Positions 43,960-57,303 of a stretch of DNA of 64,000 nucleotides are shown here, one piece after another. Source of the DNA: Mantamonas sphyraenae STR306 (lineage: Eukaryota; Protista; CRuMs); NCBI GenBank assembly GCA_026936335.1, contig JAPMXV010000032.1:62001-126000 (forward strand), given 5' to 3'. The position numbers and the translations under genes were made by a program. Below the pieces are notes generated by a model. It had not been told where the DNA came from, did not search any database, and worked only from the letters and a program-made list of their open reading frames with translations. Every line of letters starts with the position of its first letter. Positions within the stretch are counted from its first letter, which is position 1.

Positions 43960-46900
43960 ATGGACACTTCATCCCATTTGCAATCCAACATCACACACAC
44001 CGGTACGTTGACCAGAGCGGTGCGAACACGCACGCTTCCAGCGTGGCCAAACCCGCACGCGCGAACCTGTCAAACGGCTAGCCGTCAAGGGCCCCACACA
44101 TGCACAACGTCCCTCCCAACCTCCACTGCACACCGCCACTGCCTTTCCACACATATTGGACATTCTTCATATGCCCCGCATGGTCCATGCAGTCCTTACT
44201 CACCCGCCACGCGCACTTCACGCGCAAATCCGGAGCAGACAAAGAGAACACGTCGGAATCCGGCCCGGCCGGCCTTTTCACCCCGTCCCCGTTCAAGAAG
44301 GCCAACCAGTCCGACAACCTGGACATCAGCGGTATTTCTGTCCGCTCTCCATTCCAGGTGGTGGTCAGCAACCACCAGGGACCCGTCATTCAGGCCCAGG
44401 GTGCTGCCAAGCAAAAGCCCGCGCAAACCAACGGCAAGATCTTTCAAATGGCTTTCAGCCCCGTCGTCGCCACCAAGTCGGCCCCCACCGACGAGCAGGA
44501 CAACGACGACACCGCCACCACCACCACCACCGGCAACATGTTTTCCCTCAGCATTTCCCCCCCCAAGGCGCAAGCCGACGATGCTGCCAAGGACAACACC
44601 GCCAACAACAACAACGACGACGGGCCCAGCATGTTCGCCCTCACCATCTCGCCTCCGGCAGCCACCAAGAGCAGCAGCAGCGCAATCCCCCAGCGCGATG
44701 TGCAGCTCAACGCTGACCAGACCGAGTTCCCCGTCCTCTATCTCGAGCGCTTCGCAGGTGTGCCCTGGGTCAAGTTTGACAAGGTGCCCGCTGGAGGCAA
44801 GCGCGTCCGCCAGCTCAAGCTCCGCAACGACGGCAACAAGGACGCCCATGTGAGCATTGATCACGTGCCCACCGACTACGCCTTCTCTCTCTCTCACTAC
44901 GCCGACATCACTGTCCCGGCTCAGAGCTCCTTCGACCTCTTCATCACCTGGGAACCCGAGGCCGAAATCGTTGGCAACATCCGTCAGAAGCTCAAGTTTG
45001 TTTGGAACAACAAGCACAAGCTCGAGGCCATCCTCTTTGGCACCGTTACCATTGCCAAGAAGAACAAGGCCGGCACGTCCAAGCGCCGCAAGCTCCACAG
45101 CTACGCCGGTGCACCCAAGAAGCGTCGCGTCGTTCCTGAGGACACAAACGAGGCCAAGGACGATTCCTCTTCCTCTTCCTCCTCCTCCTCCTCCTCCTCC
45201 AAGGCCATCCAGCGCACCTCTACCGAGGAGGCCGCTGCAGCTTCCGTTGCGCGCCGCACCTGGGATATCCGAGACCGCCGCGTCGACCCGCTCCCGTTTG
45301 TCGGCGCCACCCCCCAGTCCAGTGCCAAGACGGCCCCCAAGTCGTCCTGCAAGCAGCGTCGCCGCATGTACAAGGAGGAGGGCGCCATCGGCCTGCCCTT
45401 TGTCGCCTCCAAGCGACCCACCGCGGCCAAGCCCTTCCAGTTCAAGACCGGCAAGGAAATCGCAGCCACCACCCTGGCCAACGACGACACAGCTCCCACT
45501 GGCGATGAGCAGTTTGCAGTGTTTGCCCCGCCGGCTGCTCTCGACTCCAGTGTCGTTAGCGTCGCCAGCCTCAACACGACCACCGACAGCTTCGCCGACG
45601 ACTTTGTCGTGCATACCGTCGATGACGCCACCAAGGAGAACCGTGAGGCCGCCGCTGCTCTCGTTGCCCCGGCCACCATCAGCCACAAGAAGCAGAAGGC
45701 CAAGGCTGGAGGCTTCAAGCCCCTCGAGGCCCAGGCTGCCGAGCCCGTCAAGACCCAGGACAAGACAAACGCAAAGGCAAAGGCCAAGACCGCCCCCAAG
45801 CCCAAGCGCAACACTTCGGCCAAGGTCAACACCGCCCGTGCCACCACCATGCCTTCCAGCTCCTTTGGGAAGCGCCGTGGTGCTGCCAAGCCGGCGTCCA
45901 AGACCCTCAAATTGAGCAGCAAGAAGCACAGCGCCAGCAGCTCCAGCAGCTCCAGCTCCAGCAGCAGCAGCAGCACTGAGCCGGTCTCCTCCACCTTCAA
46001 AGCCAAGAACATGCTCTACGACGAGCAGTGGGCCGAGAAGCAGGATCGCGCTTTCACGCGCTGGCTCAACCATGCGTTTGGCACCGACCAGGACACCGTG
46101 CCTGTGCTCGCCGCACGCGCTTCGACCAAACCCAAGAACTACAGCCAGATGCTCGCGCAGCGCAATGAGCTCCAGCTGCGCCGCCGCTGCTGGCAGATCT
46201 TCCACTCGGACATGTTTTCCGACGTCATCTTCCGCCTGGAAGAGGAGATCGAACAGGGTCGCCTCCTGGTGCGCGCCGACAAGAACATGTACGCCGATGT
46301 CGGGCTCCGTCGCGAGGTGCTCGACCTGGTGGCCAACTTCAACAGCACCTGGGTGCGCCTTGCCCTGGAGACCATTTATGGTCAGCAAATCCGCGTCCGC
46401 GACTCGGAGACCCAGCGCGCAGCCACCGAGCGCTTCATGGTGTCCCGCATGCTGTTTGACGACAACATTGCCGCCGAGTACGAGTCCAGCACCACCGCTG
46501 GTATCTATCGCGAAGGCTACGAGGCTGCCTTGGCCAAGTTCACCCTCAAGAAGTTCCTCCTTTTGGTGTTCTTTATGGAGACTGCCAAGGCCGAGCGCAT
46601 CATCGCCTCGGATCCGTGCCTGTTTGAGGTCAACGCACACATCAAGTCCACACGCGATGTGCTGCTCACCTTTTCCAAGGAGTACCTCAGTGGCGAGGGC
46701 GACCTGACTCGCCATTTGTCCTTCCTGGGCATGAGCTTTTCGCACGCACAAGTGCCCCTGCACGAGTTTGACTTCAACGTGAACAACCTGGCCACCGACC
46801 TGCGTGACGGAGTTCGTCTGTGCATGCTTGTGCAGAGCCTGACTGGAACCGACGCCGATCTGCTGGCCCAGCTGCGCATGCCGGCCATCAGCCTTGTGCA

Positions 46901-49900
46901 GAAGCGCCACAACGTCGGAGTCGCCCTCAACTTCCTCGCCGAGGAGGGCGTACATTTCACAGGCATCCGTGGTGGGGTCAAGGTCAATGACATCGTCGAG
47001 GGACACCGCGAAAAGACCCTGTTCCTGCTGTGGAACCTGATCATGAACTACCAGATCCCGTCGCTGCTCAGTCTGCACGACCTCAAGGACGAGATCCAGA
47101 TTGTGCGCAGCAACACACAGGGCCAGTGGGCCCACGACGAGTACAACGCCGAGCTGCAGAAGATGCAAGAGCAGGTTGTGTACGTGGACAACGAATACGC
47201 CGAGCTGCTGCTCAAGTGGGCCCAGGCCATTTGCGCCTCTTATGGCATGGCGGTGAAGAATCTGAGCACTTCATTCAGCGACGGCAAGGCCCTGTGCTTC
47301 ATCATCGGCTACTACCACCCGGAACTGCTGCCCATCTCGGGAATCAAGAGCACCACCTCCGACCTGCCCAAGAACCACTACCAGGAGGAGATGGAGGACA
47401 ACAACGCCGAGGATGCAGGCACTGACGCAGGAAAGTGGTTCCGCTCGTACAACTTTGCGGTGGGCGACCAGGCCCTGGAGAACGCCCTGGGCAACGAGCG
47501 CCAGAACTTCAAGATGATCTACGAGGCTGTGCAAAGCCTTGGTGGCGTGCCCGCCCTCGTGCGCTCCAAGGACATGGTTGACACCATCCCCAGTGAGCCG
47601 TGTGTCATCTCGTACCTGGCTTTCCTGGCATCGCGCCTGATCGATTTGTCTCACGAGACTCGTGCTGCGCTCAAGATCCAGCGTGCTTACCGTGCGTACA
47701 ACAAGGCACTGGTTGAGATCCGCATGGCTGCCAGCGTCAAGGTGATCCAGCGCCTCGCTCGCGTGTTTCTGGCTCGCCGACAATTGCAGAAGCAGATCAA
47801 GAGCGCAACGATGATGCAGGCTGTGTTCCGTGGCCACCAGGCTCGCAAGGCCTACCGCTCGGAGCGCAAGGCTGTGGTCACGGTGCAAAGCGCAGCCCGT
47901 CGCCTGTTTGCCAAGCGCCGTGTGCAGCAGCAGCGAACCATTCGCGAGATTCTCGCCACAGGCCTTGTTCGCCGCCAGGAGCTCATCGACCGCCGTGTGC
48001 AGAAGAAACTGGACTCGGCCGCCACCAGCATCCAGGCTGTGTTCCGTGGTTTTGCTGCTGCCAAGCAGTACAGCCAGCTCAAGGCCGCAGCTGTGGTTTG
48101 CCAGAAGATCGCCCGTGGCAACGCCGACCGTGCTTTCGTCAAGCAGGTGCGTGCTGCCACCAAGGTGCAGGCCACCGTGCGTGCCTTCCAAGGACGCCAG
48201 GCCTTCCTGGCCCAGAAGCAGGCTGCCATCGCCGTGCAGGCTGCCTTCCGTGGTCACCAGGGACGCAAGTTTGCCGTGTTTGTGCGCTGCGTGCGCTTCA
48301 CACAGGCTCTGCGTCGCCGTGTCGTGGCCCGCCGTGCCTTTGTGGCCCAGAAGCAGGCAGCCATTGCGCTGCAGGCCACTGTGCGCGGATTCATTGCGCG
48401 CAGCAAGTACGTGGAACTGAAGGAGGCTGCAGTCACCATGCAGTCTGTGTTCCGCGGCAAGCAGGCACGCGAGCATGTGCAGCAGATTCGCGCTGCCATC
48501 AAGATCCAGGCAGCGTTCCGTGGCCATGTGCAGCGTGAGGCATACCTGGAGATGGTGGAGGCTGCAAGCTGCATCCAGGAGCGTGTGCGTGCATGGTTCT
48601 ACCAACGCGACGCTCGCAGCGTGTTTGTTGCCCAGCGCGAGAGCGCCGTTGCCATCCAGGCTGTGTTCCGTGGCTTTGCTGCTGCCAAGCAGTACAGCCA
48701 GCTCAAGGCCGCAGCTGTGGTTTGCCAGAAGATCGCCCGTGGCAACGCCGACCGTGCTTTCGTCAAGCAGGTGCGTGCTGCCACCAAGGTGCAGGCCACC
48801 GTGCGTGCCTTCCAAGGACGCCAGGCCTTCCTGGCCCAGAAGCAGGCTGCCATCGCCGTGCAGGCTGCCTTCCGTGGTCACCAGGGACGCAAGTTTGCCG
48901 TGTTTGTGCGCTGCGTGCGCTTCACACAGGCTCTGCGTCGCCGTGTCGTGGCCCGCCGTGCCTTTGTGGCCCAGAAGCAGGCAGCCATTGCGCTGCAGGC
49001 CACTGTGCGTGGATTCATTGCGCGCAGCAAGTACGTGGAGCTGAAGGAGGCTGCAGTCACCATGCAGTCTGTGTTCCGCGGCAAGCAGGCACGCGAGCAT
49101 GTGCAGCAGATTCGCGCTGCCATCAAGATCCAGGCAGCGTTCCGTGGCCACGTGCAGCGTGAGGCATACCTGGAGATGGTGGAGGCTGCAAGCTGCATCC
49201 AGGAGCGTGTGCGTGCATGGTTCTACCAACGCGACGCTCGCAGCGTGTTTGTTGCCCAGCGCGAGAGCGCCGTTGCCATCCAGGCTGTGTTCCGTGGCTT
49301 TGCTGCTGCCAAGCAGTACAGCCAGCTCAAGGCCGCAGCTGTGGTTTGCCAGAAGATCGCCCGTGGCAACGCCGACCGTGCTTTCGTCAAGCAGGTGCGT
49401 GCTGCCACCAAGGTGCAGGCCACCGTGCGTGCCTTCCAAGGACGCCAGGCCTTCCTGGCCCAGAAGCAGGCTGCCATCGCCGTGCAGGCTGCCTTCCGTG
49501 GTCACCAGGGACGCAAGTTTGCCGTGTTTGTGCGCTGCGTGCGCTTCACACAGGCTCTGCGTCGCCGTGTCGTGGCCCGCCGTGCCTTTGTGGCCCAGAA
49601 GCAGGCAGCCATTGCGCTGCAGGCCACTGTGCGCGGATTCATTGCGCGCAGCAAGTACGTGGAGCTGAAGGAGGCTGCAGTCACCATGCAGTCTGTGTTC
49701 CGCGGCAAGCAGGCACGCGAGCATGTGCAGCAGATTCGCGCTGCCATCAAGATCCAGGCAGCGTTCCGTGGCCATGTGCAGCGTGAGGCGTACCTGGAGA
49801 TGGTGGAGGCTGCCACGACAGTGCAGTCTGTGTTCCGTGGTCACCTTGATCGTCAACACGTGCAGCGCATCCGTGCTGCAATCAAGATCCAGGCTGCCTT

Positions 49901-52389
49901 CCGTGGTTTCGTGGCCTACGCCGACTATGAAGAGAAGCGCGCATGCGTGACGGCCATTGCGGCTCAGTTCCGCGCCCACGTGGCTCGCTGCAAGTACGTC
50001 GCTTTGAAGGAGAGCAGCGTGCGCGTGCAGGCTGCTGTGCGTCGCAACCAAGCCCAGGGTCGCTTCCAGACGATGCGTGCCGCTGCCATTGTGGTTCAAA
50101 CCACAGTGCGTGGTTTCCAGGCACGATGTGCCTTTGTGACCCAGAAGCAGGCTGCCATCCGCATCCAGGCCGCGGTCCGTGGTTTCCAGGCACGCAAGGC
50201 ATTTGTAGAGCAGAAGAAGGCTGCCACAGCTGTGCAGGCTTGCTTCCGTGCATTTGCCGCACAGCGCAAGTACCAGAGCCTGCGTGGTGCAGCTCTGATC
50301 TGCCAGAAGAACGCGCGCTGCATGGCTGCTCGTTCGCTGTTTGTGCAGCAAAAGACGGCTGTGACGACCATTGCCGCTGCTGTGCGTTGCGCTATGGCCC
50401 AGAGCTCGTACCAGGCGCTGCGTAGCGCCACCGTGGCGATGCAGGCCATCGCCCGTGGCAACGCTGCTCGCAACCATGTGCGTGCCATCCGTGCCGCCGT
50501 CGCCATCCAGAGCCAATGGCGTCGTGTTGTCGCCCAGCGTGCCTATGTCCAGACCCGTTGCGCCGCTATCTCTGTGCAGCGTGTTGTGCGTGGGTTCCAG
50601 ATCCGCGCAAAGATCGCTCGCATGCACGTTGCAGCATCTGAGATCCAGCGCCTGGTCCGTGGCTACCAGGTCCGTGTGCAGGTCGCCCGCATGCATGCTG
50701 CCGCCACCGAGATCCAACGCGTGGTCCGTGGCTTCCAGACCCGCTGCCAGATCGCCCACATGCACGCTGCAGCCACCGAGATGCAGCGTGTGGCTCGTGG
50801 CTTCCTGGTTCGCTCTCGTGTCGCCCACATGCACACCGCAGCTACTCAGATCCAGAAAGTGGTGCGCTGCTTCCAAGCCCAGCAATCCTATGTGGCTCAA
50901 CAGAGCGCCGTGACCACCCTGTCTGCACTCTTCCGCGGCCACGTGCAGCGCCGCGTGTTTGTTGCCCAGCGCAGAGAGCGCCGTTGCCATCCAGGCTGTG
51001 TTCCGTGGCTTTGCTGCTGCCAAGCAGTACAGCCAGCTCAAGGCCGCAGCTGTGGTGTGCCAGAAGATCGCCCGTGGCAACGCCGACCGTGCTTTCGTCA
51101 AGCAGGTGCGTGCTGCCACCAAGGTGCAGGCCACCGTGCGTGCCTACCAAGGACGCCAGGCCTTCCTGGCCCAGAAGCAGGCTGCCATCACCGTGCAGGC
51201 TGTCTTCCGTGGCAAGCAGGCACGTGCTCAAGTCCGTCGCATCCGAGCGGCGATTGTGCTGCAGAGCCAGTTCCGTGGCACGGTGGCCCGCCGTGCCTTT
51301 GTGGCCCAGAAGCAGGCTGCCGTTGTGCTTCAGGCAACCGTGCGTGGCCACATTGCACGCGAGCACGTCAAGCGCGAGCGTGCCGCTCGCCAGGCTCGCT
51401 TCCTGCGCACAGCGCAGATCTTTTTGGCCTCTGTGCGCATCCAGCGTGCGTACCGCAACCACGTGGCCCGCATCGAGGCCATGAAGCGCCTGGAGTCGCT
51501 TGTGCGTATCCAAGTGTGGCTGCGTGGCACCCTCAAGCGCCGTGCCTTCCTGGCCAAGAAGCAAGCCGCCGTGTGCCTGCAGGGCGCAGTGCGCGGATGG
51601 CTCGTCGGCCGCCAAGAGGCCAGTGTGGTGGTTCAGAAGACAGTACGCGGCTGGATGGCTCGTCGCGAAGCTGCGGCACGCCGTGGTGCGCTGGCCATGA
51701 TCCAACGCTTCTTCCGAGGCCACCTGGTGCGTCGCGCTCAAGACAACAAGATGCGCAAGATGCGCCGACGTGTGCGCCTGTGCATCGAACAGGCCGAGGA
51801 GCACATGAAGCTGGGCAACCGTACCCACGTGGCTCTGGAGATCCTGCACAGCAGCAAGAAATTGAGCCAGGTCATGGATGCGTGCGAGTCGCTCGAGGTC
51901 AGCACACGTCTGTCGCACGTCTGCTCCATGCGCATGGTCGAGAACCACGCTGTGCCGATTGTGTTTGGTCTGATCCGCAGCTGCAACCGAAGCAAGCCCC
52001 ACATGGAGATCCTCAAGTCGGCCATGAGCATTCTGCGCAACCTGGTTGAGTACGAAGGCACCGTGGGCGCCGTCATCGCCGAGCAAGATTGGCTTGAGAC
52101 CATTGTCGACCAGCTGCAGAACTTCCGCGAGCGCACTGACCTCTTTGACATCGCCTTGGGCCTGATTGAGCTGGTGTGCATGGACAACGACCGGGCGGCT
52201 GACGTCAAGGACGACGCAGAGAGCGTCAAGAGGATGCGCAGCGTGCACAGCATTGTAGGCCGCAAGATGAAGAGCAGCAGCAGCAGCAGCAGCAGCAGGC
52301 GCTCTGCTAACACTGGCGGCAAGGTCAACGCAAACCGCCACAACTGGGCTCGCCTTGGCCACCTGCTGCAGTACCTGGAGTCGCTTTGA
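43960..52389 (+). CDS. ASPM: Abnormal spindle protein ASPM (ASH, 2x CH, long IQ array, ARM); 1-nt frameshift at ~50973
   Basis: YDEQWAEKQ..FTRWLN, LSGEGDL, DLRDGVRL, IVEGHREKTL, SFSDGKALC, ~50 IQ motifs, LIRSCNRSKPH. Start is either ATG 43960 (with intron 44003-44238) or ATG 44187. Confidence 0.92.
48030..49815 (+). repeat. Near-identical 624-bp tandem repeat (about 2.9 copies) within the ASPM IQ array; partial extra copy at ~50955-51200
   Basis: Matching sequence recurs at 48030, 48654 and 49278; the ORF track shows near-identical peptides offset by 624 nt. Confidence 0.92.
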
Positions 52390-53284: not shown

Positions 53285-56200
53285 TTACGGCAGGGAGCCG
53301 TACTTCTTTTCGATTGTCTTCTTGACAACGTCGCGGTAGGCCGTCTCCATGTCGTGGCACGACACACCGAGCATGACGTGGAGCTTGTGGCAGCACCACC
53401 ACTTGCAAGCCTTGGGGCAGCGGATCTTGACGAGGCGACCGACGTGCTCGTAACCGAAGCCCGAGGGCGTGCGGGTAACCAGATCGGTGTTGTAACGCAC
53501 CTTGCCCTTGATAAACTTGCCCACGGCCTTGATGCCCTTTGCCACCGGCTTGATGACCTTCTTGTGCACCGTCTTGGCCGTCTTCTTGACGAGCTTGACG
53601 GCCTTTGTGGCCGTCTTCTTGACAAACTTGGTGGCCTTGGAGACACCCTTCTTGATGCTCCTGCCAATCTTGCGGAGCTTGCGAGCGCGCACCCACATGT
53701 CGCGCACCTCTTCGCGGTAGTTGTCCTCGTCGGCAATGCAGTGTCCACCCTTGTACTCCGACACGTAGCGACGGGCACAGGGGAACGCCTTGTTGTAGGC
53801 GCTCACGTACTGAGCGTTGGCCACGCGCGGCGAACCAAAGGTGACGACGTTGACACGCGAGAAGCCGAAGCGCTTCTTGACATCCAGGGCGGACACTGTG
53901 GCCAGGCCACCACCCATGGAGTGACCGGTGACGATGAGCGAGTAGCCCAGGTCGGAGTACTCCTCGAGCGCCTTTCGCAGCTGCTCCTTGGTGTGGTCGT
54001 AGTTGCGCTTGTAGCCCTTGTGCAGGGTACCGCAGTTGCTCTGGTAGTCACACTTGGTGCGCGTGATGTGGAAGTTGGTCAGCCAATCCTTGATCGACGT
54101 CTTCTCCGTGCCACGGAACGCGAGGATCGCCAGCTTCTTGCTGTCGGACACGTAGACGGCGGAGTAGAAGCCATGCTTGCTCCAGGTCACCGACTTGACG
54201 TGGCGCCAATCCTTGTAGTTGGGCTCGTTGGGCGTCTTGTAGACGGAAAAGGCCAACGAGGCTGCGTCGGCGTCGTACTTGTCGGTGCACACGTCGGGGC
54301 CCGAAGCCTTTGCGCTGCGGGTCACCTGGGCCTTGATCATGGCCTTGGGCTGGTCCACGCTGGGGATGCGCTTTGTTGCGCCGCCCGTGGGCTTGGACTT
54401 GTCGATGGGCAGCTTCCAGTAACCGGCAGTCTTGGAACCGCTGTGGCTCAGCTCACCCGTGGAGTGCTGGTACTTGGACAGACCAAACGTCTTGGGTGCG
54501 TTGGAGCACTGCACCCAGCGACCGGCCAGGTTGGTGGCAATCGGGCGCAGGTAGGTGACGGGCTTCTTGCTTGAGCCGGGCATCACGAGAATGGCCGGAG
54601 CCATGCCGTTGGCGCCCACGCCGGTGGCCTGGATGATGGGCACGGCGCCGCGCGCGCGGTTGACGTGGTGCGACCAGCGCAGCTTCTGCTGAGGCGTACA
54701 CTTGCCGGCGGCAATGGCAGCGCGCACAGCAGTGCAGCGCAGACCACGCTTGGCCTTGTCCAGGCGAGCCTTGGCCCAGCTGGCGGCACCGATGGCCGAC
54801 AGCGAGGGCAGCAGCTCGTCGTCATCGGCCACGTTGCCCGAGGACTTCTTCTCGGCGTCGACGCGGTCGCAGGCAGCAGCCTCCTGGGCAGCACGCCACT
54901 TGTTGAACTTCTGGTAGTTGAAGGCGCCAGCAGCGGCGAGGGCAGAGCCAGTGAAGATGGCGTTGTTCTCGTCAGACTCGCCGTCCATGACCTCGTCGGC
55001 CTCTTGGACGTCCTGCGGGGTGCAGGTGGCGTCGATGTGCTTGTTCCACTTGGCACGGGCCTGCTTGGAGCAGGTGGTCTTGGCGATGGTGTTCTTGACC
55101 ACCTTGAGGGCACGCTTGCCGCCTGCAATCTTCTTGGTCAGGTTCTTGAACAGGGAGCCGCGGCGACGGCGGCGGAACCACATGTCCGTGTCCTTGACGG
55201 CCTGCGTGGCGTCGTCGCGGTCATCCGCGTCGTTGTCGTCCTGCTCGTCATCCGAGTCGTACTCGTCCTCAACCTGGCGGGCGCAGGAGCGGCTGAGCAG
55301 CACCGAGGAGCGGGCCTTGGAGACGTGCTTGGCCCACTTGCCCTTCTGGGCAACGGAGCAAGCAGCCTTCTTGGCCTTGTTCTTGGCCCAGCTGGCAAAC
55401 TTCTTGTAGCCGGCTGCGCCTGCGGCGGCCAGAGAGGCGCCGCTGAACTTGAACTCGTTGGAGTCCTGCAGCTCGTCGGCCTCCTGCACGTTTGCAGGCG
55501 TGCAGGTGGCTGCGATGTGCTTCTTCCACTTCTGCAGCTGGGCAGCAGTGCACTTGACCTTGGGCACGGCCGCCTTGATCTTGGCGGCGGCCTTCTTGAC
55601 CCTGCTGAACAGGCCACTGAGGCGGAAGAACGTGTTGCCGTTCTCGTCTTCATCGAGATCCTCGACGTTGTGGCCCATGCACTCCTTGGCAACGGCGTCA
55701 ACCTTGGCCTTGCCTGCAGCCACAAACTTCTTGAGACCCATGGCGCCGGCAGCGGCGAGCTTGGAGGCCTTGAACTTGTTGACAATCTTGGGCAGCCTGA
55801 TCCTGAGCTTGAAGCGGCGGAAGAACATCTCCGAGTCCTCGTCCTGGTCGGCCACGTTGGATTCGTCCAGATCGCTGTCCTCCTCTTCGTCCTCCTGGTC
55901 CTCGTCGTCACTCATGACGTCGTCTTCAAAGTCCTCGTCGCCGCGAGCCATGCGTGCAAGGCGCATGTTGCCGTAGGCGGCGCTGCTAAGGGCACCGACA
56001 ATGAGGGTGGGGTTGCCCTCCTCGTCGTCCATGGTGCCCTTTTCGGTGAAACCGTGCTCGTCGGCGCGCTCCTTGGCAGCGAGCTGAGCGTGTGCCTCGT
56101 AGTACTGCTGGGCCTCATCGTCCTCCACGAGGTCCTCGACGTCGTCTGCGTTGGCAGCCTTCTCGGCAGCCTCCAGGCGGTTGAGTTCCTCACGCGTCAG

Positions 56201-57303
56201 GGCAGTGTCCTCGACCATGGGCTCACTGTGGGGATTGTTGGCGGCGGGAGGTGGAGTTTAGCGTGAGCGGGCAAATTTCGGCGACAAGAGGCAACTCCTC
56301 GCGAGGTCGCGTAGCACACAGGGTGGCATGGAGGCAGGTGGCACACGCCGCAGGGACGCAAAGGAGGGCAGGGACGGACGCAGGCGCAACCGCGTATGTG
56401 ATGCGGTGCTCACAAAAGAGAAAAAGGGCGGTGTGGAGAAGAGGGTCTTGGGACCTGGCAAAAAAACATACGTTTCCCACTCCGGGTTGAGCATCACAGT
56501 CTTCTTCCACATGTCCAGGGTGTCCTTGTCGACGCCAAACTCCATGGCCTGTGCACGGGGATGGGTGGTGAGGGTGAGAATGGGCATTGGCACGCGGGAA
56601 CGGGCTGCCAATGTGCGCGAGAGGGGGCGGAAAAAAAAAGCGGGGAGGCAGTTGACGATGCAGGTGGGTGGTTGGCTCCAGGGCCAGGACATAGAGGCCA
56701 ACGAGAGGCGCAGAGGATAGAGTGGGACGGCAGATGCACATGCCGAGGCCAACGATGGCCAGGTGTAGAGGGAGAATGGAGGAGAGGGAGGAGCAGCAAA
56801 GGGGAATTTGTGGGGCGGTGGAAAAAAGCGCAAAGGGGCACGGGAGAGGTGGGACACACACACACAGGAGGTTGTGGGTGTGTCCGGCAGGTGTGGAGCG
56901 ATGGAGAATGGAAACACACCTGGTCGGTACCGTCGACGGTGACCTCTTCGGGCTTGTCCATCTCCTGGAAGTGGGCAAACTCCTCCGAGGCCTCCATGGC
57001 CTTCTTCTCCTCGTCGGTGGGCTCGGCGGCAGCGGCGGCGTTCTCGACTTGCTCGTCCTCGTCCTCGCTGTCGTCAAAGTCCTCGACCTCGTCGTTGGGA
57101 TCAGCTTCGTCGACGTCCATCTCCGCATCCGCGGACAGGTCGTCGCTGGCCAGATCGTTGTCCGAGGCCTCGGAAACGGAGGCCTCAGACTCGAGCTGCG
57201 AGCCAACGTCCAGGGCGTTCTCCATTTCGTCGGAGGACGCGCCTGCAGCGGCCACAGCAAGGGCCAGGCAGATCAGAAAGAGGTATGCTGTCTTCCCAAT
57301 CAT
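53285..57303 (-). CDS. Secreted class-3 lipase precursor with repeated acidic-spacer / cationic amphipathic modules
   Basis: Signal peptide MIGKTAYLFLICLALAVAAAG. Exons 57303-56920, 56548-56472, 56225-53285. Lipase_3 motifs ILAFRGT, DWLTN, LHKGY, VTGHSMGGGLA, TFGSPRV, DLVTRTP, YEHVG. Confidence 0.85.

Follow-up and report, generated by a model that had tools for sequence, protein, structure and literature searches.

Class-3 lipases (PF01764), among them the Rhizomucor and Thermomyces lipases and Aspergillus feruloyl esterase A, are secreted enzymes with a pro-region, a GHSxG nucleophile and a triad completed by Asp and His, and the family also includes esterases with other substrates. A lipase of Mantamonas sphyraenae has fold, secretion and these features in common with them, but it differs from them in an insertion of about 85 aa ahead of the catalytic Asp, a Cys-rich C-terminus, a very long acidic pro-region and an upstream repeat array. 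In plant aspartic proteases with a plant-specific insert (PSI; droserasin, PMC7407137) an insert likewise lies inside a digestive hydrolase and is subject to maturation; it is membrane-active there and a candidate for such activity here. The PSI, however, is a saposin fold with three disulfides within a protease, whereas the Mantamonas insert, termed module G below, is a Cys-free, predicted linear helix with its own acidic mask within a lipase and is probably left attached. Frog-skin alpha-helical antimicrobial peptide (AMP) precursors (PMC13444074) also combine a signal peptide with an acidic spacer that balances a cationic segment and are cut after dibasic residues by a convertase, as is probable here. 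They share no homology with the Mantamonas protein and contain no enzyme, whereas its modules are mostly Cys repeats or tethered to the enzyme and a conserved aromatic residue precedes the Arg site. The two-chain scorpion group III phospholipase A2 (PMC10950367) is a lipolytic enzyme in which an internal cut yields disulfide-linked chains, as may happen in Mantamonas, although its fold is unrelated, its connector has five residues and it bears no cationic arm. Luminal lipolytic attack on bacterial membranes in a protist phagosome, the role proposed here, has been shown by knockout for Dictyostelium PldX, a member of the phospholipase D family (PMC12242099).

In the literature covered, from which subscription journals were mostly absent, no paper on such an architecture was found, nor one linking Mantamonas to antimicrobial peptides or to these lipases. 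The architecture is real, apparently undescribed and composed of known principles. Its interesting core is the masked arm inside an enzyme and the recurrence of that design, not the release of four peptides, and it suggests that protists may direct digestive enzymes to bacterial prey in a manner not yet described. To our knowledge, the killing and dissolving of bacteria by free-living flagellates is poorly known. Mantamonas branches near the base of Amorphea. The genus consists of bacterivorous gliding flagellates, and the FALCON assembly of M. sphyraenae holds 25.06 Mb in 78 contigs at 59% GC (PMC10492846); the genome as searched comprised 25,061,354 bases in 78 contigs.

Gene model and charge layout

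The gene lies on the minus strand of a 64,000-nucleotide stretch of this genome, here called the window, between an ASPM-like gene and a cytidylyltransferase-like gene. Canonical GT-AG sites define exons at 57303-56920, 56548-56472 and 56225-53285 that together encode 1133 aa, in agreement with the roughly 1130 aa given in a preliminary description of the locus. Exons were searched one by one, and length and charge of the whole protein are sums over exons. Residue numbers refer to the Met encoded at 56218; positions in the full protein are higher by 156. The features are as follows.

56920..57303, minus strand: exon 1, 128 codons, signal peptide and start of the acidic pro-region, net -38 (GT donor, GC3 0.82)
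about 57238-57303, minus strand: signal peptide in exon 1, judged by eye
56549..56919, minus strand: predicted intron 1, GT-AG, phase 0 (splice signals)
56472..56548, minus strand: exon 2, 77 nt, portion of the pro-region (GC3 0.88)
56226..56471, minus strand: predicted intron 2, GT-AG, phase 2 (splice signals)
55826..56225, minus strand: start of exon 3, remaining acidic pro-region, net about -39 (charge count)
55679..55825, minus strand: module A (+12), FFRR junction, LAAAGA repeat, single terminal Cys
55502..55630, minus strand: module B (+11), FFR junction, C-x5-KW-x-KH repeat, two Cys
55283..55453, minus strand: module C (+13), LAAAGA and KW-x-KH repeats, junction without an Arg site
55022..55180, minus strand: module D (+16), junction of WF and five Arg
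54869..54958, minus strand: module E (+2), LAAAGA repeat, single terminal Cys
54650..54814, minus strand: module F (+11), both repeats in degenerate form, no acidic spacer before the linker
54302..54649, minus strand: basic linker, its Cys-containing part alignable to the M. plastica orthologue
53285..54301, minus strand: class-3 lipase domain, Cys-rich C-terminus and stop codon (Pfam, alignment, model)
53696..53740, minus strand: conserved hairpin Cys (53738-53740), then the short acidic piece of the in-lipase insert (alignment)
53492..53695, minus strand: module G, 68 aa inserted in the lipase directly ahead of the catalytic Asp, a cationic amphipathic helix (+26) also kept in M. plastica (alignment, model, shuffles)
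53918-53920, 53483-53485 and 53354-53356, minus strand: codons of the triad Ser, Asp and His (89-sequence alignment)

Judged from its splice and coding signals, the three-exon lipase gene is real. GC3 was coding-like and even through all modules (0.82-0.90) and 0.55-0.65 in the introns; this uniform codon bias ruled out concealed introns and a misread frame within the modules, and bacterial contamination was ruled out by the introns, the eukaryotic neighbours and the orthologue in Mantamonas plastica. The single RNA run found gave two 151-nt contigs, at least 99% identical, inside the lipase and covering no splice joints. The predicted link between signal peptide and lipase is supported by the splice signals and by the M. 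plastica transcript protein P0269, in which signal peptide, acidic pro-region and lipase lie in one chain. Exon 2 showed no significant similarity to the M. plastica pro-region (p=0.16). The N-terminus is signal-peptide-like by eye, as previously noted.

The charges of the precursor cancel almost exactly, with -80 in the pro-region and +81 in the rest and a net charge of about +1, which supports the proposal that acidic pro-pieces mask cationic segments. The balance is looser in M. plastica (P0269 -8, P0121 +18). Alternating acidic and basic blocks and all four junctions quoted in the preliminary description were recovered, but six modules lie upstream of the lipase rather than three, C and E having been missed. 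Modules A-F are built from two repeat units, F-x-x-S-x-LAAAGA and C-x5-KW-x-KH, and B-C and D-E form a duplicated pair (z 21.6). Acidic spacers mostly begin directly after a Cys. Since modules A and E contain one Cys each, disulfides across modules may form. No homologue of residues 120-640 was found in the word-indexed database or the Atlas, and the single-sequence model of the repeat region reached a pLDDT of only 39.

Amphipathicity was evaluated as the hydrophobic moment (muH) against 2000 shuffles per module. The claim of K/R-rich amphipathic segments held for the in-lipase insert G (muH 0.68, p=0.003), the sole clearly amphipathic module of the protein, but not for modules A-F, which scored no higher than shuffles (p=0.09-0.76). 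Strongly amphipathic mature helices, the mark of frog-type AMPs, are therefore represented by G alone; the protein fails the amphipathicity test as a frog-type AMP polyprotein, yet borrows that logic.

The insert in the lipase core and its relatives

The Lipase_3 (PF01764) match scored 86.5 bits against a curated cut-off of 22 (E 2e-24), with the GHSMG motif present, and Ser767, Asp912 and His955 were invariant in an alignment of 89 sequences. The lipase model (pLDDT 78) matched fungal lipases and a feruloyl esterase at Z about 25, with an rmsd of 2.4-3.2 over about 215 aa. By family score and by the placing of the triad on the modelled alpha/beta hydrolase fold, the protein belongs to Lipase_3, and the C-terminal lipase with intact GHSMG described earlier is thereby upheld.

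The fourth module of the preliminary description in fact lies within the lipase fold, as an insertion of about 85 aa that separates the last core strand from the catalytic Asp. The distance from FGxP to this Asp is 114 aa, as compared to 21-33 in 115 of 116 database homologues. Within the insert, the conserved Cys 827 and a short acidic stretch lead up to the junction, behind which 68 Lys-rich residues with a net charge of +26 are drawn by the model as two low-confidence helices sticking out of the lipase core. Module G passes at its C-terminal end directly into the strand that precedes the catalytic Asp, and no conserved second cut is visible there. A saposin fold or plant-specific insert was ruled out for G, which has no Cys and no saposin Pfam match and is hosted by a lipase. 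The hairpin Cys is also kept in relatives lacking the insert.

Three paralogues in the same genome (L002, L003, L004) carry inserts at the same lipase site, and a profile built from the four own-genome lipases found M. plastica proteins as best matches. One of these, P0269, shares 44% identity with this protein across the lipase. In a quick tree it is the sister of the present gene (SH-aLRT 92), and a second M. plastica protein, P0121, pairs with L002 (SH-aLRT 98). P0269, P0121 and L002 have an acidic-then-cationic insert at the same site, each amphipathic at p<=0.003, and both M. plastica proteins keep the acidic piece, the aromatic-plus-Arg junction and the amphipathic helix. Modules A-F are absent from P0269; what is conserved is therefore the arm inside the lipase, and the upstream array was either added or lost in one lineage. 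In L003 (G000:C44:263492-267019) the acidic piece and a WFFRR junction are kept and followed by a Ser/Asp stretch without a cationic helix; thus not every junction unmasks an arm. A further lipase paralogue close to L003, L008 (G000:C67:244804-248181), shifts reading frame just past the FGSP motif through an intron, a frameshift or an assembly error.

Arm-bearing lipases also occur beyond Mantamonas. Those of Fabomonas tropica (P0125, P0239) bear a cationic helix without an acidic piece in a different loop, before the GxxHxGF motif; Fabomonas lipases have the hairpin Cys and the Cys-rich tail in common with Mantamonas, with a short hairpin. In a Goniomonas lipase the site used in Mantamonas is occupied by a weaker insert. 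In Naegleria lovaniensis P0153 and Willaertia magna P0174 (net +97 and +109) a very long, Lys-rich arm without an acidic mask lies at the N-terminus; in these and in P0190, Lipase_3 is preceded by Lys-rich amphipathic repeats of up to about 270 aa without an acidic pro-piece. Fabomonas, Goniomonas, Naegleria and Willaertia are phagotrophs. The arm-bearing lipases cluster near one another with weak support in the quick tree (SH-aLRT 80-84). That arms occur in related lipases without masks or evident cut sites suggests that the arm acts without being released. Long basic C-terminal repeats were also seen in related lipases on JGI contigs of 9-31 kb (P0128, P0244, P0270), one of them labelled phage-related.

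The junction motif

An aromatic residue followed by RR or an Arg run was present, under a strict rule, at 14 of 22 tabulated junctions, a partly motif-selected set, including both from M. plastica. In this protein the Arg site is clean in A and D, with RR or an Arg run just behind the aromatic residue, weaker in B and G, where there is only a single R or an R-x-R/RxLR site, and missing in C, E and F. No K/R stands ahead of the aromatic residue. A putative cut after the Arg residues is likelier than one before F/W, where the modules had been thought to start, given the aromatic-then-RR pattern, the dibasic cuts of frog precursors and two P_proprotein loci in the genome.

The sharing of the junction among modules, already recognised in the preliminary description, extends to M. 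plastica and to unrelated secreted genes of the genome. At least seven non-lipase genes carry it (L010, L013, L057/L058, L085, L086, L087, L090), L088 has a looser form, and several of these have signal peptides; in most carriers the aromatic residue and RR or Arg run are often followed by a G-x-F-type helix start. None of those scanned had a Pfam match above cut-off. As they were partly found with the motif itself, these carriers show recurrence, not frequency. Across the genome, matches to W-R5 and junction patterns at the DNA level did not clearly exceed those of reversed controls (129 vs 134, 34 vs 31, 21 vs 14), and no genome-wide junction count is therefore claimed.

The carriers differ in build. 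L090 (G000:C54:160281-163397) is secreted and has two junctions of ten Arg each, with one acidic/cationic module seemingly between two similar Tyr-Cys hairpin halves. L057 and L058 (G000:C32:348634-355399) are two almost identical genes in inverted orientation; both have the junction together with an extended amphipathic, Gly-rich region, and L058 has the shorter open frame. L010, L087 and L088 (C55, C75, C43) are large proteins of one family, in which junction and cationic helix are accompanied by a domain predicted to be beta-rich that matches no Pfam entry, and L013 (G000:C18:55236-58361) has an acidic block followed by more than 500 extremely Arg/Lys-rich residues.

Proposed maturation and alternative readings

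The reading we favour, and to which we give about an even chance, is that of a pro-lipase whose cationic arms are unmasked yet stay tethered, aiming the enzyme at bacterial membranes. It would enter the secretory pathway as a neutral precursor (computed net about +1). A convertase of the kexin/furin type would then cut the Arg-containing acid-to-base junctions in a late compartment, most likely after W/F-x-R-R, removing the pro-region and opening the loop inside the lipase. The resulting two-chain enzyme would have Ser on the first chain and Asp and His on the second, held together by the fold and by a probable disulfide from the conserved hairpin Cys. The second chain would begin with module G as a long amphipathic Lys-rich helix, and modules D-F would remain on the first chain. 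The arms could then attach to anionic bacterial envelopes, which they would probably disturb as well, and deliver the lipase to the phospholipid of the prey in a food vacuole or at a feeding surface. The upstream array may be a lineage-specific amplification of the same masked-arm design.

The kill-and-digest role proposed in the preliminary description survives in part: a lipase combined with cationic segments against prey fits the charge balance, the conservation in M. plastica and the recurrence. Its mechanism, a polyprotein cut on both sides of each module into free membrane-permeabilising peptides and a lipase, with G excised in the manner of a PSI, is unlikely. Signal, acidic spacer and cationic segment are laid out as in frog AMP precursors (PMC13444074), several junctions give G-x-F-K/R starts behind the Arg runs (muH 0.5-0.67), and Arg cuts could free A and B-C; but the upstream modules are no more amphipathic than shuffles, and no second cut is conserved behind G. 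Release of AMP-like helices is not well supported because the conserved amphipathic helix, G, lies inside the lipase and would head the Asp/His chain, because junctions C, E and F have no Arg site and the upstream Cys repeats are missing from the orthologue, and because the arms of Naegleria, Willaertia and Fabomonas, without an adjacent acidic spacer, look like attached appendages.

Rather improbable, too, is an uncut protein whose alternating charges are used to sort or condense it into dense granules, or form a pH switch in which the spacers become protonated in acid and release the arms where they are. The near-exact charge balance, the junctions without a protease motif (C, E, F) and a block pattern common in secreted proteins of the genome agree with it, but a recognition site explains better than bulk charge why the aromatic-plus-Arg junction persists from one species to the other and in unrelated genes although the sequence around it drifts. 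Very unlikely is the same processing for a surface coat, for secretions used in gliding or adhesion, or for reshaping the lipids of the cell itself, as junction carriers without a recognisable hydrolase domain and the armless L003 might suggest, since cationic amphipathic helices favour anionic membranes and all named eukaryotes with arm-bearing relatives are phagotrophs (Mantamonas: PMC10492846).

The tethered-arm pro-lipase, whose masked, putatively membrane-binding helix is shared by M. sphyraenae and M. plastica and has counterparts in ancyromonads, cryptists and heteroloboseans, offers a specific enzyme for expression and testing, and the shared junction a sequence handle for listing the processed secretome of the Mantamonas lineage. 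Tentatively, and with more doubt than attaches to that reading, a single portable cassette of acidic mask, aromatic-plus-Arg cut site and cationic arm may be spread over many secreted Mantamonas proteins, even within enzyme cores; together with a lipase subfamily that repeatedly gained arms at different positions in several deep-branching phagotrophs, it could form an undescribed, possibly ancient prey-killing toolkit of bacterivorous eukaryotes.

Elsewhere in the window, the ASPM-like gene (44100-52389) contains near-identical 208-aa blocks in its IQ array and a change of frame near 50960-52050.
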